Sequence record: LC592711.1
Reading direction: 5' to 3' (one strand)
Length of the DNA: 64,000 nucleotides
Each line of letters opens with the position of its first letter. Position 1 is the stretch's first letter. A program made the translations under genes and the position numbers. A model generated the notes under the pieces. It ran no database searches. It saw only the letters and a list, made by a program, of their open reading frames with translations, and was not told where the DNA came from. This document shows positions 5,165-21,007 of the stretch, piece after piece.

Positions 5165-5172
5165 AGGCAAAC

Positions 5173-5778: not shown

Positions 5779-5786
5779 GCACAGAC

Positions 5787-5814: not shown

Positions 5815-5821
5815 TGTCCGT

Positions 5822-7099
5822 TTATGCCACCTGGATCTGAATCTCTTCTTCGATGAGTTTCACGAACATGGCGTCGCCCAATGTCCCTGCTTTACCCATC
5901 CACATCTGGTTATCCACTGCTACCCGATCATCCGAGCCAACAGTGTTAAACAGATAGTTTCGTTTGAAGGTGTCGTGGCAGCGGAGCAACCAGCCACCAG
6001 CCTCGTATTGCGACCAGTAGACTTCATGTTTGCCTTCCCCCGTGACCAGAGGCCACTTGGGTTCTTCCCACGACATGAACGTGTGGGGAACGGTTTGCTT
6101 TTCCGGATAGGTACGCTCGACCACCAGATTCGACGTATCGAGCAACACCATGAAAGACTGGCTCATGGTGAAGTAGTTCTGGAGGTAAGCCTGCGACTTG
6201 AATTGCTGCGCGATCACCCAGTTCGGATTGTCGACCTGATGCTGGATGTTGAACGCCGAGAAGTCCAGATACGGCTCGCTCTCGAAGTAACGTTCCAGGA
6301 ACGGGTACTTGAACGTCTTGAATGTCAGCACGTTCGTATTGGTGAGCAACACCTGATCGTTATCCGGCAAGAGCATGTAGCCGCCGAGAATCAGGATGGG
6401 CGTCTTTACGCACAGATCGCATTCGGTGAATTCGATGTGGACCTTATCGACCAGACCCGTATCCGGGTTCAGATCGAACGACAGCATGTCAGGCGTGATC
6501 GCATGGATGTCAAACGTACCGAAAGTAGCGAACGACAGAAGACCCAGTTGATTCGCACCTGACTTCATCCGCGACTTGTTACCGTCGATGATGTAATAGC
6601 CTTTCGAGTCAGCTGCCGAGTTATGGTAGAAACCATTCACGTTGGGCAGGATCTTCGAGCGCATCGACACATAGTCGAAACCCTGCTGATCGCCGGGATT
6701 GTCGGGCTTCACAACCACGTGCGGTTTCTGTTCCTGAGTCAACTCCACACCTGCTCCGACCATGTAGTCGATGGAGTCTGCCCAGAAGTCAGCTTCCCAC
6801 AAATCACTGAAGATTGCGTTGTTTCGAACGATGACCGGACTACCTACAACCGTAGGTAAAGTTTTATTGCCATTCGCGGTCAGATAGTCTGAAATCGTCC
6901 CCACATTGGCCTGGATGCCAGCAGCAACGTTTTCCAGATCCAACGTCAATTCCGTGTCGGTGATTCCGTCCGTCAGGACGACGTAGATCTGGCGGTATTT
7001 GGTCAGGAGAGTGCTCGTCAGTGCAGTCGAGATATCGACAACGGACCAGCGTTTATTTGTGCCGGGTTGAACGGCGAGAGCACGAACGAAGGTGTACAT
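5822..7099 (-). CDS. phiKZ-like virion structural protein (baseplate region)
   Basis: 425-aa ORF with phage-like codon use between the spike and tail-fibre genes; function inferred from context. Confidence 0.5.
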   Translation of the reverse strand: MYTFVRALAVQPGTNKRWSVVDISTALTSTLLTKYRQIYVVLTDGITDTELTLDLENVAAGIQANVGTISDYLTANGNKTLPTVVGSPVIVRNNAIFSDLWEADFWADSIDYMVGAGVELTQEQKPHVVVKPDNPGDQQGFDYVSMRSKILPNVNGFYHNSAADSKGYYIIDGNKSRMKSGANQLGLLSFATFGTFDIHAITPDMLSFDLNPDTGLVDKVHIEFTECDLCVKTPILILGGYMLLPDNDQVLLTNTNVLTFKTFKYPFLERYFESEPYLDFSAFNIQHQVDNPNWVIAQQFKSQAYLQNYFTMSQSFMVLLDTSNLVVERTYPEKQTVPHTFMSWEEPKWPLVTGEGKHEVYWSQYEAGGWLLRCHDTFKRNYLFNTVGSDDRVAVDNQMWMGKAGTLGDAMFVKLIEEEIQIQVA

Positions 7100-7185: not shown

Positions 7186-9261
7186 ATGTCCGATCCCGTG
7201 ACCAGCTATCCGTTTGACCCCACAGGGCAGGCGGCTAGCAACCGAATCGTGGATGAACAGATCGTCGTCCTCCCTCCGGGTGACCGACTGTTCCAGTTCG
7301 CCATGCCAGTCTTCTGTCCTTTCTTCGAAGAAGGACACTCACTGAAGCTGCGTGATATCAATAACAACGTCACACCATTAGTAATGGGTGTCGACTATTA
7401 CCTCAGTCACAAGTTCATGGATGCCTCCTTGGCTACCATGCACCCGATCTGGGGTTCGATCAGCTTTCTGAAGCCGGTCAGCGGTGTTCTGCTGATGACG
7501 TACAACACCCTCGGTGGTGATTGGACGATCGATCAGGCGACGATTACCGAAATCTTGATGAACACGAGCCAGAACCCGCGTATCACCACGTGGGAACAGG
7601 TCGTGGAACGTCCGGTGGATTTCCCGGTGATCGATCACCCGTGGGATCTGGCCGATATGGTCGGCATGTCGGAAATCTACGGCGTGCTGGAGAACTTCTA
7701 CACCGCTTACCTCGCGTCTCTGGACCCGAATGGCGGTGGTGGTGGTTCCTCGATCATCATCGATCACATCAACAACAAGAACAACCCTCACCAGGTGACG
7801 GCTGCTCAGGCCGGCGCTTACAGCACGCTTCAGATCGACACGATGCTGGGCGGCTATGTCAAGACGACCGGCACTGCTGCGAACTCGACCCAGTTCAACG
7901 GGAAGACGTACGCTCAGATGCTCACTGACGTGGCTGGGGTGAAGGTCGCAAACGCCGCCGCTGCAGACAATGCAACACATGCTGTCACGGCTGATACGGC
8001 AACGAACGCCAATGCCCTTGGTAACAAGAGTCTGTCGCAGCTGATGACTGACGTGGCAGCTACGAAAGTCGCAAACGCTGCTCACGCAGACAATGCCGAC
8101 CACGCAACAAATGCTGACCTGGCGACCAACTCCAACCAGTTGGGTGGTCAGTCACTGACCCAGGTACTCGCCGCGGCTCAGGCTCAAACGGCTGCAGACT
8201 CCGCCAAATTCAACGGCAAGAACTATGCTGATGCAAAGGCAGACATTCTTTCCGGACAGGCAGCAGACTCGGCTCTGTTCAACGGTCAAACGTTGGCAGA
8301 GATCATGGCAACACTCCAGCAAGCTACAGGCGACGCCAGCACGCTGAATGGCAAGTCGTATACCGACATCATGGCGGCAGTGAAGACCACCAAGGTCGAC
8401 AATGCTACCAATGCGGATACGGCAGCCAACGCCACGGCACTCGGCGGCCAGACTCTCTCGCAGATTCTGACGTCGGTGGCAGGCGTGGTTCCTGACCTGG
8501 CGCACAACTCGGAAGCTGTGTACGGCTACACGTTCGACCAGCTGGTCACCGCTATCGGACAAAGCACGACCTGGGTGAACGGCCTTGACTACCTGTGCGT
8601 TGATCTCGATCTGGAACATGCCACGTTGCAGTCGCCGGCGAATGGCGGTACGGTTGACAATTCGTACCACTACCTGTATGTCGGTTCGTTCCCGATTCCG
8701 ACGACGGGTTCCAGCAACCAGTACTACGACCCGACTCAAGAGCTTTATAGCTCATCGATGGACTTCTTCATCTACGGTCAGTCGAAGACTCAGCGTCTGC
8801 GTGCAAACTTGCAGGTGAACGCCGACAACAAGACAATGGGCATCACGTACTACAATGATACCGGACTGGATGTATCGGTCGCGGGTCTGGGCTTCCGCAC
8901 GGTTGCCAGTACGCTGAAGTCCTCGGATAACTCGCAGACGGCAAACGTCAACGAAGTTTATCTGAAAGTCAAGACGAGCGAAAACGTCCGTCGTGTTGGC
9001 ATCTTCCAATTCACGAAAAACAGCTTCGTCATCGACGAATCTGAATCGCTGAGTCTCTACGACTCGACGTTCGTGAATCTGAATGGCGTGACCTGGGTCA
9101 GCCCGAGTCAAACCGCTCAGGAAGCCGCAAATGCTGCTGCTGTTACGGCAGAAGCTTCGGCTCGTGGAACTGCTGATGCGGCAATCCGCACGGACACTCA
9201 GGCAGCGCTGGACGCACTGGCTGATCAGATCAACTCTCTCACCAGCACTCCGGCTGCTTAA
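7186..9261 (+). CDS. Tail fibre protein
   Basis: N-terminal YPFDPTG...SNRIVDE baseplate-anchor-type domain; repeated (F/L)(N/G)G(K/Q)(T/S)(Y/L) and ANAA.ADNA fibre repeats; HINNKNNPHQVTAAQ motif. Confidence 0.75.
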   Translation: MSDPVTSYPFDPTGQAASNRIVDEQIVVLPPGDRLFQFAMPVFCPFFEEGHSLKLRDINNNVTPLVMGVDYYLSHKFMDASLATMHPIWGSISFLKPVSGVLLMTYNTLGGDWTIDQATITEILMNTSQNPRITTWEQVVERPVDFPVIDHPWDLADMVGMSEIYGVLENFYTAYLASLDPNGGGGGSSIIIDHINNKNNPHQVTAAQAGAYSTLQIDTMLGGYVKTTGTAANSTQFNGKTYAQMLTDVAGVKVANAAAADNATHAVTADTATNANALGNKSLSQLMTDVAATKVANAAHADNADHATNADLATNSNQLGGQSLTQVLAAAQAQTAADSAKFNGKNYADAKADILSGQAADSALFNGQTLAEIMATLQQATGDASTLNGKSYTDIMAAVKTTKVDNATNADTAANATALGGQTLSQILTSVAGVVPDLAHNSEAVYGYTFDQLVTAIGQSTTWVNGLDYLCVDLDLEHATLQSPANGGTVDNSYHYLYVGSFPIPTTGSSNQYYDPTQELYSSSMDFFIYGQSKTQRLRANLQVNADNKTMGITYYNDTGLDVSVAGLGFRTVASTLKSSDNSQTANVNEVYLKVKTSENVRRVGIFQFTKNSFVIDESESLSLYDSTFVNLNGVTWVSPSQTAQEAANAAAVTAEASARGTADAAIRTDTQAALDALADQINSLTSTPAA

Positions 9262-9272: not shown

Positions 9273-10394
9273 ATGAGCGACGTCAACATCACTCCCGTCT
9301 CACATGTTTTCGACGAGACCGGCACCCTTGCCGAGAACTACGTCGAGAACGAACAACGAGATCTGGCACAGCGCAATATCCGCGCTGCTTGCACGCGATA
9401 CGGTGCTTTCTTCATCGAATCGTTCAAGATCCGGGACGCCAATGGCAATCCGCTTGCGGCGAACCAATACCAGTTTGGCCTGTTCGCAGAAGAACTGTCC
9501 GAAAAGACTGGTAAGGAAATCGCGGGTGCGGTGATCATCACCGACCCGGCAGTGATTTCGCCCGTCTTCATGGACTACCAGTGTGTTGGTGGTCCGTGGG
9601 GCGCAACCAACGAGCAGATCATCGATCTGTTCACGGCGTTGATGTCTGACGACCGTCCTGTGACGTGGCCGAACATTCTGGGTAAACCGGATGGCTTCAA
9701 GCCTGCTCACCACTTCCAGGACATCGGTGACCTCTTCGGTGCCGAGTACTTCGTCAATGCGCTGGAGCGTCTGACCAACGCGTACCTCATGGGCGACAAT
9801 GCGTCGCACGATGAGATTCTGCGTAACATCGATCAGTTGCGTCAGGACATGAATCAGGGCTTGACTGACCTGAGCAATGCTCTGAAGGCATACGCGGATG
9901 CAGGTGATGCACGCGTTCAGGCTAACCTGGATAACGAAGCACAGATCCGCGCTCAAGCTGATACGACGCTCCAGGGCAACATCAATACGGAAGCGACGAC
10001 TCGCGGCAATGCCGACACGACTCTGCAGAACAACATCAACGCCGCGATCACGCATGCGGATAACGGCGATGCTGCACTTCAGCAGAACATCAACTCGGAA
10101 GCCACGGCCCGTCAGAACGCCGACACGGCACTCAATACGAGTATCAATTCGGTGAACACGGCTCTCGCCACTCACGTGGCCGCAAAGGGCAACGTGCACA
10201 GCCTGACACCTGCGCAGCTGGGCGTCTATACGACTGCTCAGGTGGACGCACTGATTGCTCAGATCAACAACCAGCTGACCGGCTATGTCAAGAAGAATGC
10301 CGGCGAAGACACCTCGCTTACCGTGAGCGGTGGCGTGTTGTATGGCTGGGTGGGTGGTAACTGGCGTGCAGTTTGGCCGCCCCAGTGGCAATAA
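9273..10394 (+). CDS. Tail fibre protein (paralogous N-terminus to 7186..9261)
   Basis: HVFDETG...ENYVENE N-terminus; coiled-coil EAxxRxxADxxLQxNI repeats; GNVHSLTPAQLG motif; ends GWVGGNWRAVWP. Confidence 0.72.
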   Translation: MSDVNITPVSHVFDETGTLAENYVENEQRDLAQRNIRAACTRYGAFFIESFKIRDANGNPLAANQYQFGLFAEELSEKTGKEIAGAVIITDPAVISPVFMDYQCVGGPWGATNEQIIDLFTALMSDDRPVTWPNILGKPDGFKPAHHFQDIGDLFGAEYFVNALERLTNAYLMGDNASHDEILRNIDQLRQDMNQGLTDLSNALKAYADAGDARVQANLDNEAQIRAQADTTLQGNINTEATTRGNADTTLQNNINAAITHADNGDAALQQNINSEATARQNADTALNTSINSVNTALATHVAAKGNVHSLTPAQLGVYTTAQVDALIAQINNQLTGYVKKNAGEDTSLTVSGGVLYGWVGGNWRAVWPPQWQ

Positions 10395-10435
10395 CGATAA
10401 TTAATTATTTTATTCCATGATGTTGTGGTTAAGCA

Positions 10436-11359
10436 ATGGAGTGGGATAAAATGTTGATTGTCGATAAAGAAGTTGATCTCAGCTTGTGGGATGCAGCCGG
10501 GTTTTTCCGGCTGCTTTCTTGCTTGGAAGAAAATGAAATCGATGAATACAAGCAGTACAATGATTCATTGATAGGCATGCGTTATCTCAATATAATGCCA
10601 ACACAGCAAAACGACATCAGTGGCGTTTATGTGATGTATTTCAAATCAAACAGTAAGTTCTATATCGGAAGTAGTCGAAAATGTGCCGGTCGCATCGCGG
10701 TCCATCACAACTACATGAAAGCCGGAAGACATCAAAACGTTAGAATCGTTCAAGCATATCGTGAAAATCATCAGTGTAAGCCAGAAGTGATTTTTATCGA
10801 TACGTATACTGAGGAACGAGCTCGTCATGTCGAACAGCGACTGATTGACCTCGTCTTTCTGGATCCGTACTGTCTGAATCAGCGTCAGATGGTCGAGGAA
10901 TATCGTCCTTCCACTGAATCGACTCGCGAGAAGCTTCAGTCATCTGCAAAGCGACAATGGCAGGATCCGAATTTCAAGAAAAAGATTAAAAAGATTTATT
11001 CTGATCCGAACCATCGTGAACGTAGAATCGCCAACGGCAAGAAACTCACGGAAGATCCGGAGTACATGAAGAAGCTCAGCGATGCCTCTAAGAAGCTCTG
11101 GGAAGATCCAGAATACGCTGAGAAGATCAAGAGGTCTGGTTCTGCGGTCTGGGACGACGAAGCCTTCAAAGAGCGTCATAAGGCAGCCATGAAGGCTAAG
11201 TGGGCCGATCCTGAATACAAAGCTCGCGTGGTTGGTAAACGTGCTGAGGCTCAACGTAAACCCGTTACGATTAATGGAGTCCAGTATTCTCATGCAAAAG
11301 CAGCTGCACAAGCGCTAGGTATGAGCGAGACTTCGGTTCGCCGCAAATGCGACAAATAA
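10436..11359 (+). mobile_element. Free-standing GIY-YIG homing endonuclease (Seg-like)
   Basis: SGVYVMYF...FYIGSS...R catalytic motif, conserved E and N, about six W/L-x-DP(E/N)(Y/F) helical repeats, C-terminal HTH (VTINGVQYSHAKAAAQALGMS). Confidence 0.82.
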
Positions 11360-11405
11360 AAAGCAATAAGCCGTCGGGATATAGTGACTCTATAGGGGAT
11401 TGATC

Positions 11406-11894
11406 ATGACCATAGTCTTGAGACATATCTCGTTGGATGATCTACATCTCGACGAGCTGCTGTTTTCGCCGTATCCGTACGAACAACAGATGGTGAAGTA
11501 CATCACTGCTGACGGACGACAACTTACGCCGAATGATGCTTCTGAAGTTGGTACCATGAAGCAGTTCGGTACGATCAAAATCGAAGGCATGGAAAAGATC
11601 TCGAAGAAGGTCTTTGATGCTATCAAGAAGTTCTCGCATGATGGTCCTTTGACCTGTCATGTCTTTATCGCAGCTGAAGGTGCCCCCAGTTTTCCGGATC
11701 ACACCGATCCGGACGACGTCATGCTTTATGTCGTCGATGGAATAAAAACAGTGATCATCGATGGTACGGTCCATGTTCTGAACGCCGGACAGTCCATCTA
11801 TATTCCTGCTGGTGTGGTACACCGTGCAATCAACACTTCCTCCTCAGTGATGATGAGCATCGGCTTTGAATCTTACATTGTGGAGAAACTTTAA
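11406..11894 (+). CDS. JmjC/cupin-type 2OG-Fe(II) oxygenase
   Basis: CHVFIA...SFPDHTDPDDVMLYVVDGIKT...LNAGQSIYIPAGVVHRA gives an HxD...H facial triad, as in ribosomal oxygenase-like cupins; in-frame TTG at 11400, ATG at 11406. Confidence 0.75.
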   Translation: MTIVLRHISLDDLHLDELLFSPYPYEQQMVKYITADGRQLTPNDASEVGTMKQFGTIKIEGMEKISKKVFDAIKKFSHDGPLTCHVFIAAEGAPSFPDHTDPDDVMLYVVDGIKTVIIDGTVHVLNAGQSIYIPAGVVHRAINTSSSVMMSIGFESYIVEKL

Positions 11895-11896
11895 AA

Positions 11897-12961
11897 ATGC
11901 ATCGCACGGTATATATCAAAACAACGGAAGCGTGCAATCTGAACTGCAAGCATTGCTTTACCGGGGGCAGTCAACCGAAGCGTGAATTCCTCGACGTGGA
12001 AAGAACGATCGACTGGGTTCGACGTCTGTTTGAACACTTGAGTTTCGAGGACCACACGCATTTCGAACTCCACGGTGGTGAGCCGTTCCTCCTGCCCGTC
12101 AAGCAGTTGAAGGAACTGACTAAAGGTATTCGTACCTGGGGTCCGGTCAAGCACTCGATTGGTGCGACCACGAATCTGGTTTACAAGTTGACGGATGAAC
12201 TCCTCTGGTTCATCCGCAACGATCTGGAAAGCATCGGCACGTCCTGGGATCCGGATATCCGATTCAAGAACGACAAGCAGTACCAGCTGTGGTGGGAGAA
12301 CATGAAGACCATCACGAATCACTGTGATGTCACACTGAACGTGAGTGTCTCCCGCAAGCTGACGGAAATGAACGTCAGCGATCTGCTGATGTATCTGCGT
12401 GACACCGGTGCTTCCAAGGTGCAATTCGAACGCATCACCCAGAACGGGAACGCGAAGAAGAATCTGGCTCTTTTCCCCACGAATGCAGAAATCAACGACT
12501 GGTATCTGCGCCTGCACAACGCGTCCGAGAAGTTGAATGCTCGCGACTGGTTTTACAACGCAGCACTGGAAGACGTGTATGCAAAATTCGAAAATGGCAA
12601 TGCTTGCTCTGGCACGTTCTGTCGGAATTGCGAAGAGACCATCTTTACGCTCAACGCGGACGGCAGCATTGGGGGTTGCGCCAATTCGGCGCCAGAGGAA
12701 TCCTTTGGACACATCGACATGGACATCGGAGAACTCTTCGACGCCACTGGACGAATCGATAACATTGTTAAAGAGCGCATGCGCAACGAGCAGTGTTACG
12801 TTTGCCCTGTGGCCGCTCATTGCGGTGGTGATTGCCACCGACTGGCTTGGGAAGGCGATGTGTGTGCAGCACCCCGGCAGCTGATGAAGAAGCTCGCTGG
12901 TTTGCCGCTCGACGCACCCGAAGTCCAACCGAAACGTATCATTCCCATCATGGTGGTTTAA
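11897..12961 (+). CDS. Radical SAM/SPASM protein 1 (peptide-maturase type)
   Basis: CNLNCKHC (CxxxCxxC), HGGEPFL, SPASM cysteines CSGTFCRNC...GGC...CYVCPVAAHCGGDC...C. Confidence 0.9.
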   Translation: MHRTVYIKTTEACNLNCKHCFTGGSQPKREFLDVERTIDWVRRLFEHLSFEDHTHFELHGGEPFLLPVKQLKELTKGIRTWGPVKHSIGATTNLVYKLTDELLWFIRNDLESIGTSWDPDIRFKNDKQYQLWWENMKTITNHCDVTLNVSVSRKLTEMNVSDLLMYLRDTGASKVQFERITQNGNAKKNLALFPTNAEINDWYLRLHNASEKLNARDWFYNAALEDVYAKFENGNACSGTFCRNCEETIFTLNADGSIGGCANSAPEESFGHIDMDIGELFDATGRIDNIVKERMRNEQCYVCPVAAHCGGDCHRLAWEGDVCAAPRQLMKKLAGLPLDAPEVQPKRIIPIMVV

Positions 12962-12967
12962 GGAAAT

Positions 12968-13528
12968 ATGAGTACATATCGCACAGACGTCGACGCCGTA
13001 GCCCAGGCGTACGTACGTAACCAGGTGAACGGGAGTATCAATCCGTTCCGCTCGGACTGGGCACCGGGCTACACGAACACCGGCTTGCTGGGCTGGATCT
13101 CGCAAGATCCCCCTGCATCGCATCCGTCGTCCAATGGCGAACTCAGCACTGCCGGTAACACGATGGTGACCAACCAGGTTCGCAATGCGATGATTGACCT
13201 GGGCAACTACTACGGCTGGATCGCCAAGGGCCACTACGGTCTGCAGTCGACCAACCAGAGCGGCGCGAACTACTTGCAATACGAGGGCTACGGCTACTTC
13301 GTGTTCAACGGTGCAGCGCCTGGTGCTCAGGATCATGCGAACCGCGTGGCGGCAGATCTGAACACCGCTGGGACGATGAACGGCACGATTCGTTATCAGT
13401 CGCTCATCGACTTCTACAACTTCGCGTGGAGCATCATCTGGAATCGTAAGGACGACCTGCAAGTCGAACTCACGGTTTGCCATTCGTCGTGCCACACTTC
13501 GTGCCACGGCTCCCGCGGTCGTCGTTAA
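12968..13528 (+). CDS. Putative radical SAM substrate protein with C-terminal (CHxS)3-RGRR motif
   Basis: Ends VCHSSCHTSCHGSRGRR; all three Cys of the protein lie in this tail; strong RBS (aagga), 6 nt after the rSAM1 stop. Confidence 0.65.
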   Translation: MSTYRTDVDAVAQAYVRNQVNGSINPFRSDWAPGYTNTGLLGWISQDPPASHPSSNGELSTAGNTMVTNQVRNAMIDLGNYYGWIAKGHYGLQSTNQSGANYLQYEGYGYFVFNGAAPGAQDHANRVAADLNTAGTMNGTIRYQSLIDFYNFAWSIIWNRKDDLQVELTVCHSSCHTSCHGSRGRR

Positions 13529-13538
13529 GGAGAAGAAC

Positions 13539-14606
13539 ATGATCAATCTGTTCGATCGTGTCTATCTGCGACACGACAACGTTCTCGCTCGTGGTGAAGG
13601 TCAGAAGAAGCTGATCATCAGCCCGAAAGTCAAAGAGATCGCGTACGTCACTGATGCACTTCAGCAACAACAAGCTGGCATCCTCGGCACGTACGAGACG
13701 CTCGCCGACGCCATCCATTACGCTGGCGACATCAACGCGTTCTGGGGACAGCTGCGCACCAAGGCGAAGATCGTCATCATCGCTGACCGTGTGACCGTCG
13801 CTACGCTGCTCGTACAGTACTGGAAGGCAATCTTCCAGAGCCCGTCGAAAGAAAGCCTGTATCTGCTGTACGAGATCATGGTGAACAACGAGAACCTGCA
13901 TTCGCACCGTCCGACGGAAAAGCGCACGCATCTGTTCTCGCCCAATTCGACGCCGGGCGATGTCGAAAAGCTCACGGAAGAAGAGTTCCAGGAAATCTTC
14001 GACAAGAACGAAGCGGCTCTGATCGACTTCTCGTCGGATGCTCAGCTGTCGAGCATTCCGTTTGAATATCTGCTGATGTCATATCTGGCAGATCCGAAGG
14101 ACGAGTTGGTGAAGCGAGTGCTCTTCCAGAAGCTCGACGGCATCATGCGCAGCAACATCGTCGCGAAGCTGATCGGCGGTCGTGAAGAACTCATGTTCGA
14201 ATCGCACAACTACTATCTGCTCACTTCGGATGGGCCGGAAGAACTGATCGTCGACCCGATCGGTTACATGAAGAAGAGCGGTCATCTGGCATGGGTCATG
14301 GACGAAGCATTCGTCTACGGCAACGAAGACGAGATCCTCGCGAAGTATTCACTGGATCAGATCAAGTTCTTCTTCGAACAGATCAAGCGTCTGGTGCTGG
14401 AAGATGAATCGATCTTCGTGGCGATCGACTGCGTGAAGAAGAAACAATTCGCGCGCCTGATCGAATACGACATCGACGATCATCAGGGTAACTTCTTCGG
14501 CACGGGTGCGTTCGTGAACAAGATCAACGGTCTGTTGGTTTCGTTCGCGTATCAACTCAAGCGCATGGGGAACGTGAATCTCCTGAAGCAGTACGAACTG
14601 AAGTAA
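13539..14606 (+). CDS. Hypothetical protein of the radical SAM island
   Basis: 355 aa, RBS aggag, tightly coupled to the substrate-like gene; no motif recognised. Confidence 0.7.
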   Translation: MINLFDRVYLRHDNVLARGEGQKKLIISPKVKEIAYVTDALQQQQAGILGTYETLADAIHYAGDINAFWGQLRTKAKIVIIADRVTVATLLVQYWKAIFQSPSKESLYLLYEIMVNNENLHSHRPTEKRTHLFSPNSTPGDVEKLTEEEFQEIFDKNEAALIDFSSDAQLSSIPFEYLLMSYLADPKDELVKRVLFQKLDGIMRSNIVAKLIGGREELMFESHNYYLLTSDGPEELIVDPIGYMKKSGHLAWVMDEAFVYGNEDEILAKYSLDQIKFFFEQIKRLVLEDESIFVAIDCVKKKQFARLIEYDIDDHQGNFFGTGAFVNKINGLLVSFAYQLKRMGNVNLLKQYELK

Positions 14607-14612
14607 TTCGAA

Positions 14613-14653
14613 TGCTGCCTGACTCCTTCGGGAGTCGGGTAGTATCTTTTTTT
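14613..14653 (+). terminator. Rho-independent terminator
   Basis: tgctgcctgactcc-ttcg-ggagtcgggtagta stem followed by a T-run. Confidence 0.75.
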
Positions 14654-14700
14654 CTATTGATAGGTATTCTTTTTTGACCTATCCCACTGAGGAATACGAA

Positions 14701-16068
14701 ATGAGCGAAGATAAGAAAACCGATGTCATTCTCGAACGTCCGGCCGATGGCACTGACGCTGTACGCGACGATGCATTCGTGAAGCCGTCGAAGATCGCGG
14801 ACGCAATGTTCAAAGGCACTGAAGGTGTTCGCATTGAACTCGACCGAGTAGCTGATGTGACTTACCATGGTCCGCTGGGATCGGAGAACATCGTCGATAA
14901 GGAAATTGATCGCAAGGTTCTGGGTGACGACCCGAAGCGGATCAACCATCAGCTGATGGAACAGCCCAAGCCGGTCGTCGAAGTACTGAGCGGTACGATC
15001 ACGCCTGAAGATCAGAAACTGGGTTATTCCTGGACGCTGAAGATGAAGGTCGGTGTGGACGAAGCTGGTAACAAGGAAGTCATCCACTCGGATTCGAAAT
15101 CGACGGACGGCCTGAAAGTCGTCAATGACGAACTGGTGTGGCCGAAAGCAGTCGAAGGCACGGAAATCAGCGAAAGCGGCAAAGTCGAAATGAATGTCGA
15201 ATTCGCCGGCGGCTGGGGTACAGAACTCCCGCCGCAAGAACAAACGCCTGAAGTCCAGACCGGCATTCCGGAAGACAAGCTGCGTGAAGTTACCGTGCCG
15301 TTCCCCGCCGACAAGATCCGTGAATACTTCCAGGACAAGTCGCTCTTCTTCATCGCGAACTACAGCGAATCGAAGCTGAAGGGCGGTGCTTTCCTGACGT
15401 ATCTGTCGAACATCAACATCCCGTCGGATGTGAAGTTCAATACGCCGATCGGCTACGACGAGTACGCTGAAGTCATGAAGGCGTACATGGAACAACCTGG
15501 CGTGATCAACTGCGCAGGTCTGCATGTGATGGCTGCTGAAATGCTGCTGTTCGCCAAGGGTCTGCCGTATGAGCGTTCGCCTTACGCTCTGCCGATCGAA
15601 GCTGCAATCGTCCAGCAGTTCATCGACAGCCACAAGGAAATGGTCGACAAGTGGTTGCACTTCATCGACTCGACGCAAGTGTTCGCTCTGCGTTCGATCA
15701 AGGCACTGAACGACTTCTACAATCCGGAGACTCGTTTCCCGGTCGTGGAAGATCGCAGCTACGTGGGCTGGAACATCGCCCAGCTGTTCCGTATCCCGGA
15801 ATTCATCGCCGTGTACTTCCAGATCGAAGGCGCGCAGTACAAGCTGTCGTACTTCAAGGACCAGTACGAAGAGTACATGTTCAAGAACGAGACGCTCGCC
15901 AAGTACTTCCAGTCGCAGAACAACTTCGCCGCGTTGTACTTCATGCACTATGCGTCGGGCCTGTTCCAGCCGGCGGACATCAATCACGGTCTGTTCCGTA
16001 TCGGCGTGTTCGATCCGGAAAGCGAATTCTTCGAGAAGACGCCGTATGACTTTAGCATTCAAGAGTGA
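14701..16068 (+). CDS. Hypothetical protein of the radical SAM island
   Basis: ATG 14701 after a gagga RBS, in the frame of ORF 14674..16068; acidic N-terminal third, aromatic-rich C-terminal domain; no motif recognised. Confidence 0.7.
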   Translation: MSEDKKTDVILERPADGTDAVRDDAFVKPSKIADAMFKGTEGVRIELDRVADVTYHGPLGSENIVDKEIDRKVLGDDPKRINHQLMEQPKPVVEVLSGTITPEDQKLGYSWTLKMKVGVDEAGNKEVIHSDSKSTDGLKVVNDELVWPKAVEGTEISESGKVEMNVEFAGGWGTELPPQEQTPEVQTGIPEDKLREVTVPFPADKIREYFQDKSLFFIANYSESKLKGGAFLTYLSNINIPSDVKFNTPIGYDEYAEVMKAYMEQPGVINCAGLHVMAAEMLLFAKGLPYERSPYALPIEAAIVQQFIDSHKEMVDKWLHFIDSTQVFALRSIKALNDFYNPETRFPVVEDRSYVGWNIAQLFRIPEFIAVYFQIEGAQYKLSYFKDQYEEYMFKNETLAKYFQSQNNFAALYFMHYASGLFQPADINHGLFRIGVFDPESEFFEKTPYDFSIQE

Positions 16069-16081
16069 TTCCAACTCTTCG

Positions 16082-17146
16082 ATGACGTTGAAGGACGCAT
16101 CCCAATACCACCTGAGCCTGAGCTTGGAATGGCTAAAGGGATGCCAGTTCAACTGTAAAGGGTGCCACGTCAATAAAAAGGTGGGGCTTCCCTTTACAGG
16201 CGACGATCTCGGTAATCTGAACCGGTGGCTTGATAGCATGCGGTGGAAAGGTAATTACTTGCCAACCATCGTGTTCTTGCAGCCCACTGACTTCCTGACT
16301 GCCGAGAATACCGCCGACATCCTGAAGAGTCCGTACACATACCCGACTCTGTCTGTGTTCAAACGTCTGTCGCTGCAATCGACGTTCCTGAACATGGACA
16401 ATGCCGTCGAGATCGCTTCGATCCTGAAGGCGCGGTTCTTTCACATGGAGTTGGAACTCAACTTCATCATCGAACCTGAGAAGGTAAACAACGAAAAGTA
16501 TCTCGACACGATCAAGGCTAACCGCGATCGTTTCATCGAGATGCTCGATTGGAAGAAGCACGTCGCATCCTTCGCCATCATGAACGTCTATGAGTACGAT
16601 CGGGTGAAGAAGAACGACGTGAAGAAGATCCTGGCTGATTACCAGGCACTTCATGACAAGATCGGGGAGAAGTTTGGTTCCACGATCGACTTCAACTTCT
16701 CCATGACTCGCAATCCGTGGTGGAGTAACGAAGACGTAGCCGATGCTGTACGTGGCGTCAGTCGAATCTTCGACGATGGAGTGGACAATGTTTTTAACCA
16801 GACGATCCGCTTCTCGTTTGGTAAGCTGGAAGACTCGTCCATCGAAAAGCATTACAACTGGCATCAAGGGCACTTGTATGTGTCGCCGATGATCTACGAG
16901 CGTATCGCATCGTTTCATCGGAAGCTTCAGATTCCACTCACGCTGTATTCCGTGTGGGAAACAGAAGACTTCGAGCGTCGGTTGTTGATCGATCAGTATC
17001 ACAACTCCGAAACCAAGACCGAGTGCAATTCGTGTCGATATCAAGCCTCTTGTATTGAGCGCAATGTCCTGACGTTTATGGACATGCACGAGATCAAGGA
17101 CTGCATCATCGCCCGCAAAGCTCTCGATGCCATTAACGTCATCTGA
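16082..17146 (+). CDS. Radical SAM protein 2 (divergent)
   Basis: CQFNCKGC motif near the N-terminus; C-terminal CNSCRYQASC...C cluster; ATG 16082 follows the upstream stop at 16068. Confidence 0.75.
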   Translation: MTLKDASQYHLSLSLEWLKGCQFNCKGCHVNKKVGLPFTGDDLGNLNRWLDSMRWKGNYLPTIVFLQPTDFLTAENTADILKSPYTYPTLSVFKRLSLQSTFLNMDNAVEIASILKARFFHMELELNFIIEPEKVNNEKYLDTIKANRDRFIEMLDWKKHVASFAIMNVYEYDRVKKNDVKKILADYQALHDKIGEKFGSTIDFNFSMTRNPWWSNEDVADAVRGVSRIFDDGVDNVFNQTIRFSFGKLEDSSIEKHYNWHQGHLYVSPMIYERIASFHRKLQIPLTLYSVWETEDFERRLLIDQYHNSETKTECNSCRYQASCIERNVLTFMDMHEIKDCIIARKALDAINVI

Positions 17147-17150
17147 GACG

Positions 17151-17180
17151 CATATGGAGTGGCCTAGGCCACTCCATATG
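17151..17180. repeat. Perfect 30-bp palindrome
   Basis: CATATGGAGTGGCCTAGGCCACTCCATATG is its own reverse complement. Confidence 0.9.
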
Positions 17181-17195
17181 TCCTGTGAGGAATGT

Positions 17196-18218
17196 ATGAA
17201 CAACGATATCCTGAATGAAATGCTGTCATCCAAAGTGCAAGACAGCACCGAGATCGAACACCACCTGTTCGAGTACTGCAACCTGAACTGCTCCTTCTGC
17301 GGACAGGATCATGACTCGAAAGTCGGTATGGAATCGATCATCGACAAAGCGCATAAGACCGTGGATTTCATCTTCCATTCGAAGAAGAAGAAACACACCA
17401 TCAACGTGATGGGTGGTGAGATCTTCAATGACAAGATCGAAACGAATGTTTTCCTGGACTACTACAAGTTCTACGAGATCATCGAAAAGGTCTGTCGCGA
17501 TCTCGGCGTGGAATTCCAGATCAACTGGGTCACCAATCTCATCTTCACGGAAAACCGTGAGATGGTGCAGTGGCTCATGAACAAGACGAAGGCGCATGCC
17601 AGGATCTCGACGTCGTACGACTTCGCTGGTCGTGGGCTGGACATCAATCGTTCACTGGTGTTCAAGCACAACCTGAATCTGTTCAAGGAGCATATCGGAG
17701 TCGTCGGTTTCGTTCTCACGAAGCCTGCTATCCGTAAACTCCTCAATAGCACGGACATGTTCTTCCAGACTGTCCTGTATCCGAACTTCCCGTTGTATTT
17801 CGACTGGTACGTACCGGAGAAGTCCTCGAACAAGATGATGCCATCTGAGCAAGAAATGCTCGATGCACTTCTCTTTGTCGCGGATAAGTATCCGAACATC
17901 GAGCCGGTTAAGTCCATGCTGGAGAACGAGCACAACAAAATGACGTGCTTCAGCCTGAACAAGACCACAATCCTGCCTGATGGCAAGGAAGTAACTTGTC
18001 GGTACCTCGAATACGACAAAGAAAAATTTAACAACGACATTGATTATTCGAGCAATGCCAACATCATCCAGGCTCACCTTGATAGAAACGAATGCTATTC
18101 GTGTAATTTTTACGACCGCTGTCAATTTCGGTGTTTCGTTCAAGCCGATTGGGCTGAACTCGAACGACTCCCCACCTGCTTCATCAAAACCTTTTTCGAG
18201 CGAACAGTCGGATCATGA
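17196..18218 (+). CDS. Radical SAM/SPASM protein 3
   Basis: CNLNCSFC, VMGGEIF, C-terminal CFS...ILPDG...TC...CYSCNFYDRCQFRC...C; ATG 17196 after gagg. Confidence 0.85.
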   Translation: MNNDILNEMLSSKVQDSTEIEHHLFEYCNLNCSFCGQDHDSKVGMESIIDKAHKTVDFIFHSKKKKHTINVMGGEIFNDKIETNVFLDYYKFYEIIEKVCRDLGVEFQINWVTNLIFTENREMVQWLMNKTKAHARISTSYDFAGRGLDINRSLVFKHNLNLFKEHIGVVGFVLTKPAIRKLLNSTDMFFQTVLYPNFPLYFDWYVPEKSSNKMMPSEQEMLDALLFVADKYPNIEPVKSMLENEHNKMTCFSLNKTTILPDGKEVTCRYLEYDKEKFNNDIDYSSNANIIQAHLDRNECYSCNFYDRCQFRCFVQADWAELERLPTCFIKTFFERTVGS

Positions 18219-18787
18219 AACTCATTCTCATCGCAGCTGAAGCAGCAAACAAGGTCATCGGTAACGACGGCAAAATGCCGTGGCATATCCCGGAAGACCT
18301 GTGGCACTTCAAGGAAGTGACGTCCGGCCAAGCTGTTATCATGGGTCGCAAGACCTGGGAATCGCTCGGCAGCAAGCCTCTTCCCAATCGCGCCAACGTA
18401 GTCGTATCGAAAACGCTCGGTCCTTTGGAAGGCGCCCATTCTGTTCGCAACTTCAGAACGGCTGTCAAGACGCTGATTGCGGCTGGTTATGATCGCGTTT
18501 ACGTTATTGGTGGCGAGTCGCTTTATCGTGCCGCTCTTCCGTGGGCGTCGAAGATCATCCTTACGAAGCTCTACAAGTCGTACAAGGGCGATACGCATTT
18601 CCCGGACATCGATCCTTTACAATGGACAGAATACGATAAAGTTGACGTACTCACTGAGGAAGGATACGGATATCTTCAGTTACGCCAAAATACTCACGAC
18701 ACACTTTCCCAGCCGTTCACGATTTACAAGTACATGAACGTCAACCAACCCGACGTCGCCAAATGGGTCGACCTCATCAAGGATTAA
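18215..18787 (+). CDS. folA: Dihydrofolate reductase
   Basis: IGNDGKMPWHIPEDLWHFK, VIMGRKTWESL, PLPNRANVVVS, VIGGESLY, GDTHFP. Confidence 0.9.
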   Translation: MKLILIAAEAANKVIGNDGKMPWHIPEDLWHFKEVTSGQAVIMGRKTWESLGSKPLPNRANVVVSKTLGPLEGAHSVRNFRTAVKTLIAAGYDRVYVIGGESLYRAALPWASKIILTKLYKSYKGDTHFPDIDPLQWTEYDKVDVLTEEGYGYLQLRQNTHDTLSQPFTIYKYMNVNQPDVAKWVDLIKD

Positions 18788-18789
18788 CA

Positions 18790-19428
18790 ATGGACATCAC
18801 ACTGGTCGCAGTCATGGGTGCCAATGGGGTCATCGGTTCCGGTAGCAACAAGCCGATGTTCGTCGCCCAACACGCCGCGTTTGTTAAGCAATACGCGCAG
18901 GGCAAACCGGTCATCATGGGTCGTAAGACTTACCAAGCTCTGGGTGGCGGTATCCCTGGCGCCGACAACTACGTCCTCACGCGCAACTTCGCTCTCAGTA
19001 TTGCTGCGTTCGACAATGTGACGACTGCACTGGCTCTGGACGGTGCTTTCATTTCTGCGTTCGAGCGGAAGATGGCGAATGAATTGGTGGTGCTCGGCGG
19101 CGCCGCGACGTTCCATGCGTTCTATCCGTGGGCGAACCGCATGCACATCACGCATATTCGCGAGAACATCGAAGGAGATCGTTTCTTCCCGAGCTATCCA
19201 GGATGGCGCCCCGGTCTCATCAACGATCGTTACGAACAAGGCGAAACGCAGTTCGAACGCATCGACTACCGGCGTGATGACTGGCACTACTATCCGAACG
19301 AGACCCCGGAAGACGTGAATACGCTTATCATCCTGAATGCTATTCGCACGCAACGCGGTTATCGTCCTCTGAAGACGGAACAACATGAACCACCCATCGC
19401 TGATCATCAAGCCGACGGAAGCGTGTAA
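18790..19428 (+). CDS. DHFR-fold protein, divergent (PW..D substrate motif lost)
   Basis: VIMGRKTYQAL, VLGGAATF, EGDRFFP retained; the PWxLPxD region reads PMFVAQH. Confidence 0.75.
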   Translation: MDITLVAVMGANGVIGSGSNKPMFVAQHAAFVKQYAQGKPVIMGRKTYQALGGGIPGADNYVLTRNFALSIAAFDNVTTALALDGAFISAFERKMANELVVLGGAATFHAFYPWANRMHITHIRENIEGDRFFPSYPGWRPGLINDRYEQGETQFERIDYRRDDWHYYPNETPEDVNTLIILNAIRTQRGYRPLKTEQHEPPIADHQADGSV

Positions 19429-20461
19429 CTTCAAGTGCACTTTCTGTTCGTCCACCGATATCCAGGGCGAATCTCCTAACCTGGATATCGAGTACATCAA
19501 GCTTTACCTGGAGCGCTTTCCCAAGACTCCGACCATCATTGTCAATGGTGGTGATCCACTGATGATGAAGCCTGAGTACTATTGGGCGATCTTGAAGATC
19601 ATCGAGGATATGGGGCTGACCACCACACTCTCGTTTACAAGCAATCTGTGGGCTTTCTACAAGAAGCCTGAGATGTGGGTGGACTTGTTCCGCCATCCGC
19701 TTGTAGGCGTGTCTACGAGCTTCCAATACGGCAATGCGCGGCTTAAGGGCGACCTCACTCCGTTTACCGAGGAAGAGTTCTGGAAAATCTCGGATCTGTT
19801 CCTGGAGAAGGTCGGTTATCGTCCATCTTTTATTGCTGTCATTACAAAAGAAAATGAGGATAGCAGTATCAAGACTGTCGAGCTTGCTAAACAGATGGGT
19901 GTTGTCTGTAAGCTCAACTATGCAATGGCCTCCGGACCCAAGACAACGTTCAAGGGAATCACGATCGGTAACGCCGATTCCACGTACGTCCTTGCGGATA
20001 TCTACGAAAAGTATATCGAGATCGCCGAAGCGGGTCTCGCGCCGTGGGAACATAACACGACGGTCATGATGAAACGGCTTCAGAGAACAGGTGCTCAGAT
20101 CTGTCCTCAGGCTCGTGAATGTGACACGGGCATTCGTGCATTGCAGCCAGGTGGCAAGTATTACAGCTGCGGTGCATTCGGAGACGACGGATTATATCCT
20201 ATCGACTTCACCAATGAGATGGCAGGTGCCTTCGAGCGCCCGTTGTCTTATCAGCCCGAGCTTCAATCGCTCAAAGAAAGCTGCTACGCATGTCCTATTT
20301 TTGACATCTGCAATGGTTGCCGTAAGACCATTCATGATCTCAAACGTCTTGACCTGGTGGAGACCCACTGCTCCAAGATGAAGACGCTCGCCGCTAAGAT
20401 TATCAAGATCAACAGGCTGGAAGGACAACTGGTCCCCACGCCTTACGTCAAGGAATCGTAA
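19385..20461 (+). CDS. Radical SAM/SPASM protein 4
   Basis: KPTEACNFKCTFC, NGGDPL, CPQARECD...PGGKYYSC...CYACPIFDICNGC...HC. Confidence 0.9.
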   Translation: MNHPSLIIKPTEACNFKCTFCSSTDIQGESPNLDIEYIKLYLERFPKTPTIIVNGGDPLMMKPEYYWAILKIIEDMGLTTTLSFTSNLWAFYKKPEMWVDLFRHPLVGVSTSFQYGNARLKGDLTPFTEEEFWKISDLFLEKVGYRPSFIAVITKENEDSSIKTVELAKQMGVVCKLNYAMASGPKTTFKGITIGNADSTYVLADIYEKYIEIAEAGLAPWEHNTTVMMKRLQRTGAQICPQARECDTGIRALQPGGKYYSCGAFGDDGLYPIDFTNEMAGAFERPLSYQPELQSLKESCYACPIFDICNGCRKTIHDLKRLDLVETHCSKMKTLAAKIIKINRLEGQLVPTPYVKES

Positions 20462-21007
20462 ATGGAACTGCTTCAACCTTGGAAGACGAGCATCGGTAAA
20501 ATGTCTGTGCTGGATTTCGTGGACATTGACTCGATGCTCAATGAAGTCATGCAACACCCGAAGGTCATGGAGAACCCGGTTAACGGGTCGCTTCGGGTGA
20601 AGTATGAAGAATTCCCGATCTGTTCGGATGTGCTGGAACACAAGCTCAAGCCGGAAGTCGAGAAGTACATCGAGATGATCGGTGGACGCGCTCCTCGCAG
20701 CCTCGCCTGGAGTAGCTGGTTTCACATCTGCATGCATGGTAACGGATTGATTCCGCACTACCATGACGAGGCACTGAATTCCGTTCTGTATTTTACAACG
20801 TCGAAGGCTAATCTAGTGCTACGCGACCCTCTGTCTTCCCAAGCAAGACAGTGGCCGCAGGACATGCGCAAGAAGATGCACGCCGACCAACAGTTTCACC
20901 CAGTCAAAGGCGACTTCCTGATGTTCCCGGGATACGTCGACCATTACGTTATGGCAGATGAACCGGACTTCCGGATCTCCATGGCAACTGACTGGATCTT
21001 TAGATAA
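20462..21007 (+). CDS. 2OG-Fe(II) oxygenase (2OG-FeII_Oxy_5-like)
   Basis: PHYHD...SVLY...LVLRDP...PVKGDFLMFPGYVDHYV...RISMA. Confidence 0.8.
   Translation: MELLQPWKTSIGKMSVLDFVDIDSMLNEVMQHPKVMENPVNGSLRVKYEEFPICSDVLEHKLKPEVEKYIEMIGGRAPRSLAWSSWFHICMHGNGLIPHYHDEALNSVLYFTTSKANLVLRDPLSSQARQWPQDMRKKMHADQQFHPVKGDFLMFPGYVDHYVMADEPDFRISMATDWIFR

Follow-up and report, generated by a model that had tools for sequence, protein, structure and literature searches.

Related radical SAM and fibre systems

Radical SAM maturation is known for small peptides and for a few cellular proteins, but not for a component of a virus particle. In the bacterial HXS anti-phage system the HxsA protein is matured by the radical SAM enzymes HxsB and HxsC together with HxsD (PMC13128918). 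HxsA is a folded protein of about 200 aa rather than a short peptide, it carries repeated His-Xaa-Ser units in a basic context as well as a signal peptide and a peptidoglycan-binding domain, and the modification maps to a Ser-His-Arg-Ser-Ser unit. HxsA repeats were reported to bind DNA. A second group are the radical SAM/SPASM peptide and protein maturases with their substrates: ranthipeptide PapB, SCIFF, dynobactin DynA, the three-residue cyclophane 'triceptide' enzymes, anaerobic sulfatase maturase, and QhpD, which acts on the quinohemoprotein amine dehydrogenase small subunit. Here the enzyme is encoded next to a substrate with a short conserved Cys- or aromatic-containing core. SCIFF/ranthipeptide precursors are short (about 45 aa) with six Cys, but QhpD and the sulfatase maturase show that whole proteins can be substrates. 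A third point of comparison is given by tail-fibre tip and assembly proteins encoded just after a fibre gene, such as T4-type gp38-like adhesins and chaperones, and tailspikes with a C-terminal auto-chaperone such as phi29 gp12.

The locus considered here lies in a window of 64,000 nucleotides that is 100% identical to record LC592711.1, Burkholderia phage FLC6. An initial annotation made from the sequence alone had proposed that a 186-aa protein at 12968-13528 carries a C-terminal Cys- and His-Xaa-Ser-rich tail that is modified by radical SAM enzymes, and had likened it to HxsA and to SCIFF/ranthipeptide cores. The observation itself holds in every detail that was examined. The interpretation is only partly supported: the link to radical SAM enzymes, the folded body and the idea of a virion protein fit the data, while membership in the named families is not supported and a covalent modification has not been shown.

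The gp72 gene and its C-terminal tail

The ORF at 12968-13528 (+) starts with ATG, encodes 186 aa and ends with a TAA stop at 13526-13528. It is FLC6 gp72 (BCM95108.1, 'hypothetical protein'). The composition given for the body (residues 1-170, 12968-13477) is G 19, A 17, N 17, S 16, T 13 and Y 12 of 186 residues, so that the description of the body as Gly/Asn/Tyr-rich is fair. The tail (residues 171-186, CHSSCHTSCHGSRGRR; 13478-13528 including the stop) contains the only three Cys residues, C171, C175 and C179, at 13478-13504. Each is followed by His-Xaa-Ser (HSS, HTS and HGS, at residues 172-174, 176-178 and 180-182), and the protein ends with RGRR at 13525. The upstream gene, gp71, encodes a radical SAM/SPASM protein; its stop lies 6 nt before the gp72 ATG and overlaps an AAGGA ribosome-binding site.

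The family is large and phage-restricted, with 1338 clusters at 90% identity, and the tail is almost unchanged across more than a thousand uncultured phages. In 346 unique family members the tail is always at the C-terminus and is nearly invariant, although the bodies diverge to about 20% identity. Counted from the C-terminus, the shares are C-16 100%, H-15 100%, S-13 98%, C-12 99%, H-11 99%, S-9 87% (N 8%), C-8 98%, H-7 100%, S-5 94%, R-4 100%, G-3 85%, R-2 100% and R-1 100%; ten positions thus have shares of 98-100%, far beyond chance. The codons are saturated with synonymous change, as Ser uses both AGY and TCN, and Arg uses both AGR and CGN. Selection therefore acts on the peptide, not on the DNA.

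This pattern bears on the main alternative, namely that the tail is an unmodified metal-binding or disulfide-forming site. In this view three Cys and three His per chain, multiplied in an oligomer, would lock the protein into the fibre or baseplate, and the radical SAM enzymes and oxygenases would act on another substrate, such as the neighbouring fibre protein. Cys/His-rich C-termini are classic metal ligands, phage fibres often bind metals, and the Cys/His spacing suits metal ligation. However, Ser at -13, -9 and -5 and the terminal Arg-Xaa-Arg-Arg are as invariant as the Cys and His, which ligation alone does not explain. In addition, there are relatives that keep only the first Cys-His and the last His-Ser-Ser-Arg-Gly-Arg-Arg, for example P0021 (a family member) ending CHSSYVAPPHSSRGRR, within the same cassette. 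This is hard to reconcile with a strict three-Cys metal site. The alternative is not excluded, but it is considered doubtful. A link between tail variants and enzyme set could not be drawn, because the one-Cys variant locus L098 (L numbers denote related loci) keeps all the enzyme families; co-variation across all ~1300 clusters was not analysed.

The FLC6 cassette

In FLC6 the cassette follows two fibre-like genes. gp67 (7186-9261, +) is a tail-fibre-like virion protein with matches to PHROG 28376, 2163 (virion structural), 13857 (tail) and 8147 (tail fibre), and it keeps this position in the relatives L007-L009, L097 and L098. gp68 (9273-10394, +) is a virion structural or tail-fibre-like protein that matches PHROG 2163 at E 2e-85 and several tail and tail-fibre PHROGs; the record annotates it as a putative virion structural protein. 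The first gene of the cassette is gp70 (11406-11894, +), a cupin/JmjC-like oxygenase (Pfam Cupin_2 at 1e-14, JmjC_2 at 1e-7). Cupins of the JmjC_2 type belong to a class that hydroxylates protein side chains. A homologue lies directly before the radical SAM gene and the tail-protein gene in 51 of 85 viral loci.

gp71 (11897-12961, +) passes the curated thresholds for both domains, with scores of 30.6 on Pfam PF04055 (cut-off 29.5) and 28.8 on TIGR04085 SPASM (cut-off 27). Its full-length but sub-threshold matches go to the DynA, PapB and anaerobic sulfatase maturase models. Of 72 relatives, 69 have CxxxCxxC and 70 have a SPASM-like Cys motif. Downstream of gp72, gp73 (13539-14606, +) is a sporadic cassette member of unknown function, with no Pfam or NCBIfam hit, a match to PHROG 36207 (unknown function) and homologues in 9 of 85 loci. 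gp74 (14701-16068, +) is an unknown protein whose conserved C-terminal part (about 240 aa) follows the tail protein in the first of the two architectures described below. Homologues occur in 54 of 85 loci, directly after the tail-protein gene, but Pfam, NCBIfam and PADLOC gave no hit and its profile found nothing among PDB sequences.

The remaining radical SAM genes are interspersed with oxygenases and unknowns. gp75 (16082-17146, +; start revised from the annotated 16238) encodes a divergent radical SAM enzyme, as the ORF from 16082 carries CQFNCKGC near its N-terminus and 120 of 122 relatives have CxxxCxxC in the first 120 aa. gp76 (17196-18218, +), with a SPASM-like Cys motif, is the most widespread partner of the tail protein, with homologues in 75 of 85 loci; all 83 relatives have both Cys motifs. 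gp79 (19385-20461, +) is a radical SAM/SPASM-like enzyme (Pfam Radical_SAM at 7e-12) with sub-threshold full-length matches to the DynA and anaerobic sulfatase maturase models and homologues in 65 of 85 loci. The radical SAM and SPASM motifs are conserved in the gp71, gp76 and gp79 families. gp80 (20462-21007, +) is a 2OG-Fe(II) oxygenase (Pfam 2OG-FeII_Oxy_5, 34 bits against a cut-off of 27). gp81 (21016-21960, +) is a radical SAM enzyme without a SPASM motif (Pfam Radical_SAM 29.9, cut-off 29.5), with homologues in 63 of 85 loci; none of its relatives has a SPASM-like motif. gp82 (21957-22514, +) is a further 2OG-Fe(II) oxygenase (2OG-FeII_Oxy_5, 37.6 bits, cut-off 27) with homologues in 29 of 85 loci. 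gp83 and gp84 (22507-23792, +) are paralogous unknowns with homologues in 11 and 22 of 85 loci, respectively; gp84 weakly resembles a 2OG oxygenase (2OG-FeII_Oxy_3 at E 0.006, below the cut-off). gp85 (23795-24214, +) is a conserved 139-aa unknown protein and a core cassette member in both architectures, with homologues in 52 of 85 loci.

Two dihydrofolate reductase genes also lie inside the FLC6 cassette. As phage radical SAM enzymes take part in thymidine hypermodification (PMC8989533), and HxsA repeats are reported DNA binders, the cassette could be a nucleotide or DNA hypermodification pathway, with gp72 as a DNA-binding partner through its basic, His-rich tail. This is very unlikely: the DHFR genes occur only in the Chiangmaivirus lineage, in 3 of 85 loci, SPASM-type enzymes characteristically act on peptides and proteins, and the neighbours are fibre genes, not replication genes.

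Conservation of the locus in other phages

The initial annotation had named homologues occurring mainly without radical SAM neighbours as a finding that would overturn its reading. This was examined in 97 related loci (85 viral or metagenomic, 9 MAG, Atu_ph07, DT01 and L098), and all of them carry radical SAM genes beside the tail gene, in one conserved cassette with a cupin/JmjC protein, 2OG oxygenases and conserved unknowns, usually just after a tail-fibre gene. The commonest number of radical SAM genes per locus is 4 and the maximum is 7. There are two fixed architectures. Architecture A is cupin, rSAM/SPASM, tail protein, gp74, three rSAMs, gp85 and 2OG; architecture B has two tandem tail proteins, 3-6 gp75-type rSAMs in tandem and the same core. 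gp71 is absent from architecture B, so adjacency to gp71 is not universal. Among 50,697 phage records, the tail protein and the gp76-type radical SAM enzyme are found in the same 15 records. A scan of 185,579 species genomes for a bacterial origin found 9 loci, all in MAG contigs that carry the same phage cassette, so the family is phage-restricted; 121 other bacterial stretches matched the motif pattern but not the family, and were not inspected. The cultured cyanophage S-CAM1 shares the upstream structural gene but lacks the cassette.

In 63 loci the gene directly upstream, or upstream of cupin plus rSAM, encodes a fibrous protein of 194 to more than 3276 aa. Its last ~130 aa form a conserved domain that weakly matches tailspike C-terminal auto-chaperone domains (3gqh at E 0.004; 6qz9; 28lx). 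The fibre gene is as tightly linked to the cassette as the tail protein is, and the enzymes could instead act on the fibre protein; on the other hand, co-occurrence of the tail protein with the rSAM genes is perfect.

The identical phyletic pattern would also suit a role for gp72 as an accessory subunit, carrying an Fe-S cluster or a metal on its tail to supply or reduce the radical SAM enzymes, which would then modify something else. Radical SAM enzymes need cluster loading and a reductant, and the tail has suitable ligands. This is unlikely, given that lineages with only one Cys remain, that there is no similarity to ferredoxin, flavodoxin or scaffold folds, and that a homologue is in the virion while the enzymes are not (see below).

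Predicted structure

AF2 on 88 sequences predicts the gp72 body as a confident, single globular α/β domain (pLDDT 91, pTM 0.85), which supports the earlier suggestion of a folded domain rather than a leader. In the tail the pLDDT falls from 64 to 46, as expected for an exposed substrate peptide, and the tail is not folded into a compact knuckle; multimer predictions of the tail with each rSAM enzyme, or of the body with the fibre C-terminus, were not made. The fold has no recognised relative. Foldseek against the PDB gave nothing below E 0.39, with no match to a solved fibre-tip protein, a PDB sequence search with the family profile gave only chance-level hits, and BFVD gave only uncharacterised phage proteins. 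Pfam, NCBIfam and PADLOC gave nothing, and the one PHROG match, 35144, has unknown function.

A PqqD-like recognition element, fused to the enzyme or free-standing, was also sought. gp71 begins directly with the radical SAM motif at residue 13. The gp85 model is confident (pLDDT 93) but has no PDB fold match and no PDB sequence match, so gp85 is not recognisably such an element and this idea was dropped. As gp73 and gp74 were not folded, these observations do not settle whether the cassette encodes one.

Evidence from virions

A homologue in Agrobacterium phage Atu_ph07, gp170, was found in a published virion proteome (PMC6102473). Its tail ends ...CHSSCHASCHNSRSRR, and its calculated mass of 31.89 kDa matches Table S5 of that study. 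It was detected with 8 unique peptides and 35% coverage and was most abundant in gel band 1, the top band, whereas other 30-32 kDa proteins peaked in bands 7-8; it thus ran far above its monomer size. None of its neighbouring rSAM proteins was listed. The loading buffer listed in the paper contains no reducing agent, so the high-mass species could be disulfide-linked through the three tail Cys, which would be in line with the unmodified-site alternative. The data give protein-level identification only, and no modification has been observed on any member. There are no such data for FLC6 itself, where gp72 is not among the proteins labelled virion structural in the record, and the papers on DT01 and 332-Vera contain no proteomics.

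Presence in the virion also bears on the possibility that the tail is a sacrificial precursor, as in PQQ or mycofactocin biosynthesis, from which the enzymes would build a small cofactor or peptide that is then cut off, with the body acting only as a carrier. An invariant C-terminal core with a variable remainder beside rSAM/SPASM enzymes is the pattern of peptide-derived cofactors, and the many tailoring enzymes (4-7 rSAM plus oxygenases) suggest a multi-step pathway. Nevertheless this is unlikely, as the body is a conserved, confidently folded domain, the protein is found in virions, no peptidase is recognisable in the cassette, and the cassette is linked to fibre genes rather than metabolic genes.

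Interpretation

The best reading, held with somewhat better than even confidence, is that gp72 is a fibre-associated virion protein whose tail is matured by the co-encoded enzymes. The N-terminal domain of roughly 170 residues is a stable fold that would place the protein in the virion and may also serve as the handle by which the enzymes recognise it, and the flexible 16-residue tail, with three Cys-His-Xaa-Ser units followed by Arg-Xaa-Arg-Arg, would be their substrate. In FLC6 the proposed machinery comprises five radical SAM enzymes (gp71, gp76 and gp79 with SPASM-type auxiliary-cluster motifs, gp75 and gp81 without), the JmjC-like cupin gp70 and the 2OG oxygenases gp80 and gp82. They would act in the infected cell before or during assembly and stay out of the particle. 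The product would be a covalently altered C-terminal knot, which could stiffen, cross-link or metal-load the fibre-associated protein. Candidate chemistries are Cys thioethers, Cys oxidation to an aldehyde, His-to-C-beta cyclophanes and His/Arg hydroxylation. What is shown is the gene, the invariant tail, the conserved cassette, the fibre-gene neighbourhood, the (predicted) folded body and the virion presence of one homologue with anomalous gel migration; that the tail is what the enzymes modify, by which chemistry and to what end in the particle, is inference, and covalent modification of the core was not measured here.

A broader reading, possible but slightly less likely than not, is that many tailed phages, including jumbo phages of plant-associated bacteria and uncultured marine T4-like myoviruses, carry a dedicated and previously undescribed maturation pathway of 4-7 radical SAM enzymes plus Fe/2OG oxygenases, which would install covalent cross-links or other radical-made changes on the invariant tail of a tail-fibre-associated virion protein. 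That would make it the first RiPP-style matured structural protein of a virus and a phage-side counterpart, in logic, of the bacterial HxS defence effector. One motif is fixed across more than a thousand phage protein clusters and travels with up to seven radical SAM enzymes beside the fibre genes, so it must matter for the particle. If the tail is modified, this opens new radical chemistry on a Cys-His-Xaa-Ser unit, a new way in which phages build or harden their adsorption apparatus, and an explanation for the 'unusual' clusters of radical SAM genes that several jumbo-phage papers noted without comment. The C-terminal peptide of a known virion protein is a concrete target within existing data.

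Comparison with the described families

For HxsA, the source paper gives only a genome accession, so the curated NCBIfam models were used. gp72 and two relatives, P0013 and P0015, gave no NCBIfam family at E<=0.01, including the HxsA model. gp81 scores 22.6 bits against HxsB (cut-off 370) and gp79 scores 30.3 bits against HxsC (cut-off 267.9), both over the N-terminal core only, and no HxsD hit was found among the cassette proteins. gp72 does have repeated His-Xaa-Ser units and, like HxsA, is encoded with several radical SAM enzymes, but there is no sequence relationship by these models, and the likeness is one of logic: a folded protein with such units matured by radical SAM enzymes. No signal peptide or peptidoglycan-binding domain is seen in gp72, which has no Pfam domain and a polar N-terminus with no hydrophobic stretch. 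Each of its His is preceded by an invariant Cys, the repeats lie at the extreme C-terminus, and the system is phage-encoded, next to fibre genes, with 4-7 rSAM enzymes plus oxygenases.

A SCIFF or ranthipeptide assignment is not supported either. gp72 has 186 aa and three Cys, and gp71 scores 22.8 bits against the SCIFF maturase (cut-off 425) and 50.3 bits against PapB (cut-off 340). Compared with the radical SAM/SPASM maturases, gp71 has the CxxxCxxC core and the SPASM domain at curated thresholds, and the candidate substrate gene is co-oriented with, adjacent to and co-inherited with the enzymes. Matches to the individual maturase models are nevertheless far below threshold (for example 50 bits against 340-450), no peptidase or exporter is recognisable, and the core is more conserved than the rest of the protein, the reverse of most natural-product RiPPs. 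As in the tail-fibre tip and assembly proteins, the gene lies immediately downstream of a fibre gene, but no known fibre accessory protein carries such a tail or travels with radical SAM enzymes. Against the anaerobic sulfatase maturase model gp71 scores 42.3 bits and gp79 33 bits (cut-off 349), and gp72 has no sulfatase domain. The last tail unit only loosely resembles the formylglycine motif of sulfatases, with a Cys, a small residue two positions on and an Arg four positions on, which is a lead only.

Identity of the gene and conservation of its tail

Bases 11400-20500 of the window are 100% identical to Burkholderia phage FLC6 (LC592711.1), a 227-kb jumbo myovirus of the genus Chiangmaivirus, and 83-95% identical to Ralstonia phages RSL2, RSF1, FLC4-x and RsoM3USA and to Burkholderia phages FLC8 and SURPRISE13. 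The open reading frame at 12968-13528 (+) is FLC6 gp72, which is annotated as 'hypothetical protein' and encodes 186 aa. What the initial annotation had read from the sequence is correct: the only Cys residues of the protein are 171, 175 and 179, each is followed by His-Xaa-Ser, and the protein ends in RGRR. The gene also abuts a radical SAM gene as described there. The stop codon of the upstream gene gp71 lies 6 nt before the ATG, inside the ribosome-binding site, and gp71 passes both the Pfam radical SAM threshold and the NCBIfam SPASM-domain threshold.

A first protein search found 17 relatives, whose bodies fall to about 25% identity although all 16 tail positions but two are identical. 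A profile search of 1.8 billion representatives found 589 proteins at E<=0.001 and 216 at E<=1e-10, and a profile search of the 90%-identity clusters found 1338. None of these carries a name. Most are 170-200 aa long, with a second size class of about 125 aa. In 346 unique sequences, counted from the C-terminus, the shares by column are C-16 100%, H-15 100% and S-13 98% for the first unit, C-12 99%, H-11 99% and S-9 87% (N 8%) for the second, and C-8 98%, H-7 100% and S-5 94% (A 5%) for the third, followed by R-4 100%, G-3 85%, R-2 100% and R-1 100%. The Xaa positions (-14, -10 and -6) vary, and 76% of members have no other Cys. The motif is always at the very end of the protein (110 of 110 strict matches). 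The codons are saturated with synonymous changes, including both Ser codon boxes and both Arg boxes, and selection is therefore on the peptide. It is worth noting that a minority of close relatives of FLC6 keep only the first Cys-His and the last His-Ser-Ser-Arg-Gly-Arg-Arg; as an example, the relative P0021 ends CHSSYVAPPHSSRGRR.

Distribution

A search for the motif in phage and bacterial genomes, with inspection of the neighbouring genes, had been named beforehand as a way to test the proposal. Among 185,579 bacterial and archaeal species genomes, 130 stretches matched the Cys-His repeat pattern, but only 9 were relatives of gp72 (the other 121 were not inspected), and all 9 loci are on MAG contigs carrying the same phage cassette. 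IMG/VR gave 108 confirmed loci, of which 80 were kept. Among 50,697 cultured-phage records, the carriers are the Chiangmaivirus group, Agrobacterium phage Atu_ph07, Sinorhizobium phage Phosso and Pseudomonas phage pPa_SNUABM_DT01. The uncultured carriers of the short tandem form are relatives of T4-like cyanomyoviruses. The cultured S-CAM1 shares the upstream structural gene but has no cassette, so the module is accessory.

The radical SAM cassette

FLC6 gp66-gp86 were mapped onto six-frame ORFs of all loci. A predominance of homologues without radical SAM neighbours would have counted against the initial annotation, but every locus has radical SAM genes beside the tail-protein gene. Two architectures were found. 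In architecture A (about 55 loci, including FLC6, Atu_ph07 and DT01) the order is cupin (gp70), radical SAM/SPASM (gp71), tail protein, gp74, radical SAM (gp76), radical SAM (gp79), radical SAM (gp81), gp85 and 2OG oxygenase. In architecture B (about 28 loci) there are two tandem tail proteins of ~127 aa and then 3-6 gp75-type proteins, with gp76, gp85, gp81 and gp79 following on the other strand. In the architecture-B loci L025, L027, L074 and others (about 9700-10480), which come from the uncultured relatives of T4-like cyanomyoviruses, the tandem ~127-aa proteins correspond to the C-terminal two-thirds of gp72, and the gp75-type radical SAM paralogues that follow are in tandem.

The gp75-type proteins are radical SAM enzymes, and 120 of 122 relatives have CxxxCxxC near the N-terminus. 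In the FLC6 annotation gp75 (within window 15950-17146, +) starts at 16238, which is too far downstream and cuts the motif off, while a start at 16082, just after the gp74 stop, keeps it. SPASM-like motifs are conserved in the gp71, gp76 and gp79 families, but not in gp75 or gp81. The commonest count of radical SAM genes per locus is 4 and the maximum is 7. In the 64-kb window all five lie between 11.9 and 22.0 kb, and only one ORF has the tail. In the cultured-phage collection the gp76-type enzyme occurs in exactly the 15 records that carry the tail protein. None of the enzymes reaches the curated score of any named NCBIfam family. Their best full-length matches, which are sub-threshold, are to peptide and protein maturases, namely DynA, PapB and the anaerobic sulfatase maturase, and PADLOC gives only generic core matches.

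Link to tail-fibre genes

In FLC6 the cassette follows gp67 and gp68, which match virion and tail-fibre PHROGs. In 63 other loci the gene just upstream encodes a fibrous protein of 194 to more than 3276 aa, one of which has collagen repeats. The last ~130 residues of this protein form a conserved domain with 14 invariant columns and no Pfam model (L011:7604-8038, L096:8888-9373, where L096 is the Atu_ph07 locus, and 61 other loci), which is always encoded just before the cassette. It ends 0-13 nt before the tail-protein gene in architecture B, or about 1.5 kb before it in architecture A, which is exactly the cupin plus gp71. A profile of this domain weakly matches the C-terminal auto-chaperone of the phi29 pre-neck appendage (3gqh E 0.004; 6qz9 E 0.015) as well as the chaperone domain of a tailspike depolymerase (28lx, 28nb). 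The E-values are marginal, but three of the top four distinct hits are tailspike or appendage proteins.

Predicted structure and presence of a homologue in virions

Structure prediction of the body had also been put forward in advance. AF2 on 88 family members gives a confident α/β domain for residues 1-170 (mean pLDDT 91, pTM 0.85), while the tail has low confidence. A Foldseek search finds no PDB relative, and in BFVD it finds only uncharacterised phage proteins, including the Atu_ph07 homologue. From these predictions, the body is therefore a real domain of unknown fold class, and the tail is an exposed appendage.

The Atu_ph07 homologue, AUZ94952.1, ends ...CHSSCHASCHNSRSRR. Its calculated mass is 31.89 kDa, and the masses of its neighbours are 66.07 and 21.66 kDa, which identifies these three proteins as gp170, gp176 and gp177 in Table S5 of the published virion proteome. 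There, gp170 was found in purified virions with 8 unique peptides and 35% coverage, in gel bands 1-9, and was most abundant in band 1. Band 1 otherwise peaks mainly with 75-139 kDa proteins, and most other 30-32 kDa proteins peak in bands 7-8. The loading buffer as described has no reducing agent, so the high-mass form may be disulfide-linked or otherwise covalently linked, and the data do not distinguish between the two. The fibre protein with the conserved C-terminal domain (gp176) is also in the virion, whereas the neighbouring radical SAM proteins are not listed. The 4449-aa 'T4-like structural protein' gp180, which lies upstream of the cassette next to the baseplate wedge genes (L096, locus 1-6031), is not in the published virion peptide list either, although gp170, gp176 and gp177 are.

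Relation to described systems and interpretation

The papers on FLC6, S13, DT01 and RP12/RP31 list the radical SAM, cupin and 2OG genes without explanation, and the paper on Aeromonas phage 332-Vera calls eight radical SAM genes inside a structural cluster 'highly unusual'. No paper on the tail protein was found. The closest concept is the bacterial HXS defence system, published in 2026, in which HxsA, a folded 214-aa protein with five His-Xaa-Ser repeats, is matured by HxsB/HxsC with HxsD and carries a +8 Da change on one repeat. The initial annotation had likened gp72 to the HxsA substrates and to SCIFF/ranthipeptide cores. gp72 is not a member of the HxsA, SCIFF or ranthipeptide families; every curated model was tested and missed. 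The interpretation given in the initial annotation is partly supported, on context and the virion role, but not on family membership.

What the data show is a phage-restricted protein family that is functionally bound to a multi-enzyme radical SAM/oxygenase cassette and to tail-fibre genes, with at least one member in the particle. Beyond this, it is an inference, although the most economical one, that the invariant, exposed tail is what the enzymes work on, and that the matured protein is a fibre-associated structural component. This reading is considered slightly more likely than not. The chemistry was not determined, and could be thioethers, Cys oxidation, His cyclophanes or hydroxylation by the JmjC-like cupin and the 2OG enzymes. 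An unmodified metal or disulfide site, with the enzymes acting elsewhere, is the main alternative but is considered unlikely, and a sacrificial cofactor precursor, an enzyme accessory subunit or a DNA-modification pathway are less likely still. Radical SAM maturation of a genetically adjacent substrate is already known, and what would differ here is the setting, which has not been described.

Probable insertions and flanking genes

Two dihydrofolate reductase genes (window 18215-18787 and 18790-19428, +) interrupt the radical SAM cassette, but homologues occur at this place in only 3 of 85 related loci, all in the Chiangmaivirus lineage, and they are probably a lineage-specific insertion rather than part of the system. 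The gene gp69 (window 10436-11359, +) is a GIY-YIG nuclease that sits between the fibre-like gp68 and the cupin gp70 in FLC6 and RSF1 (locus L008), but not in RSL2 (locus L007), and it looks like a mobile homing-endonuclease insertion. Downstream, gp86 (window 24247-24633, +) is a 128-aa protein made of short Ala/Thr-rich repeats like those in the fibre-like gp67 and gp68, and the cassette is therefore flanked by fibre-like genes on both sides.
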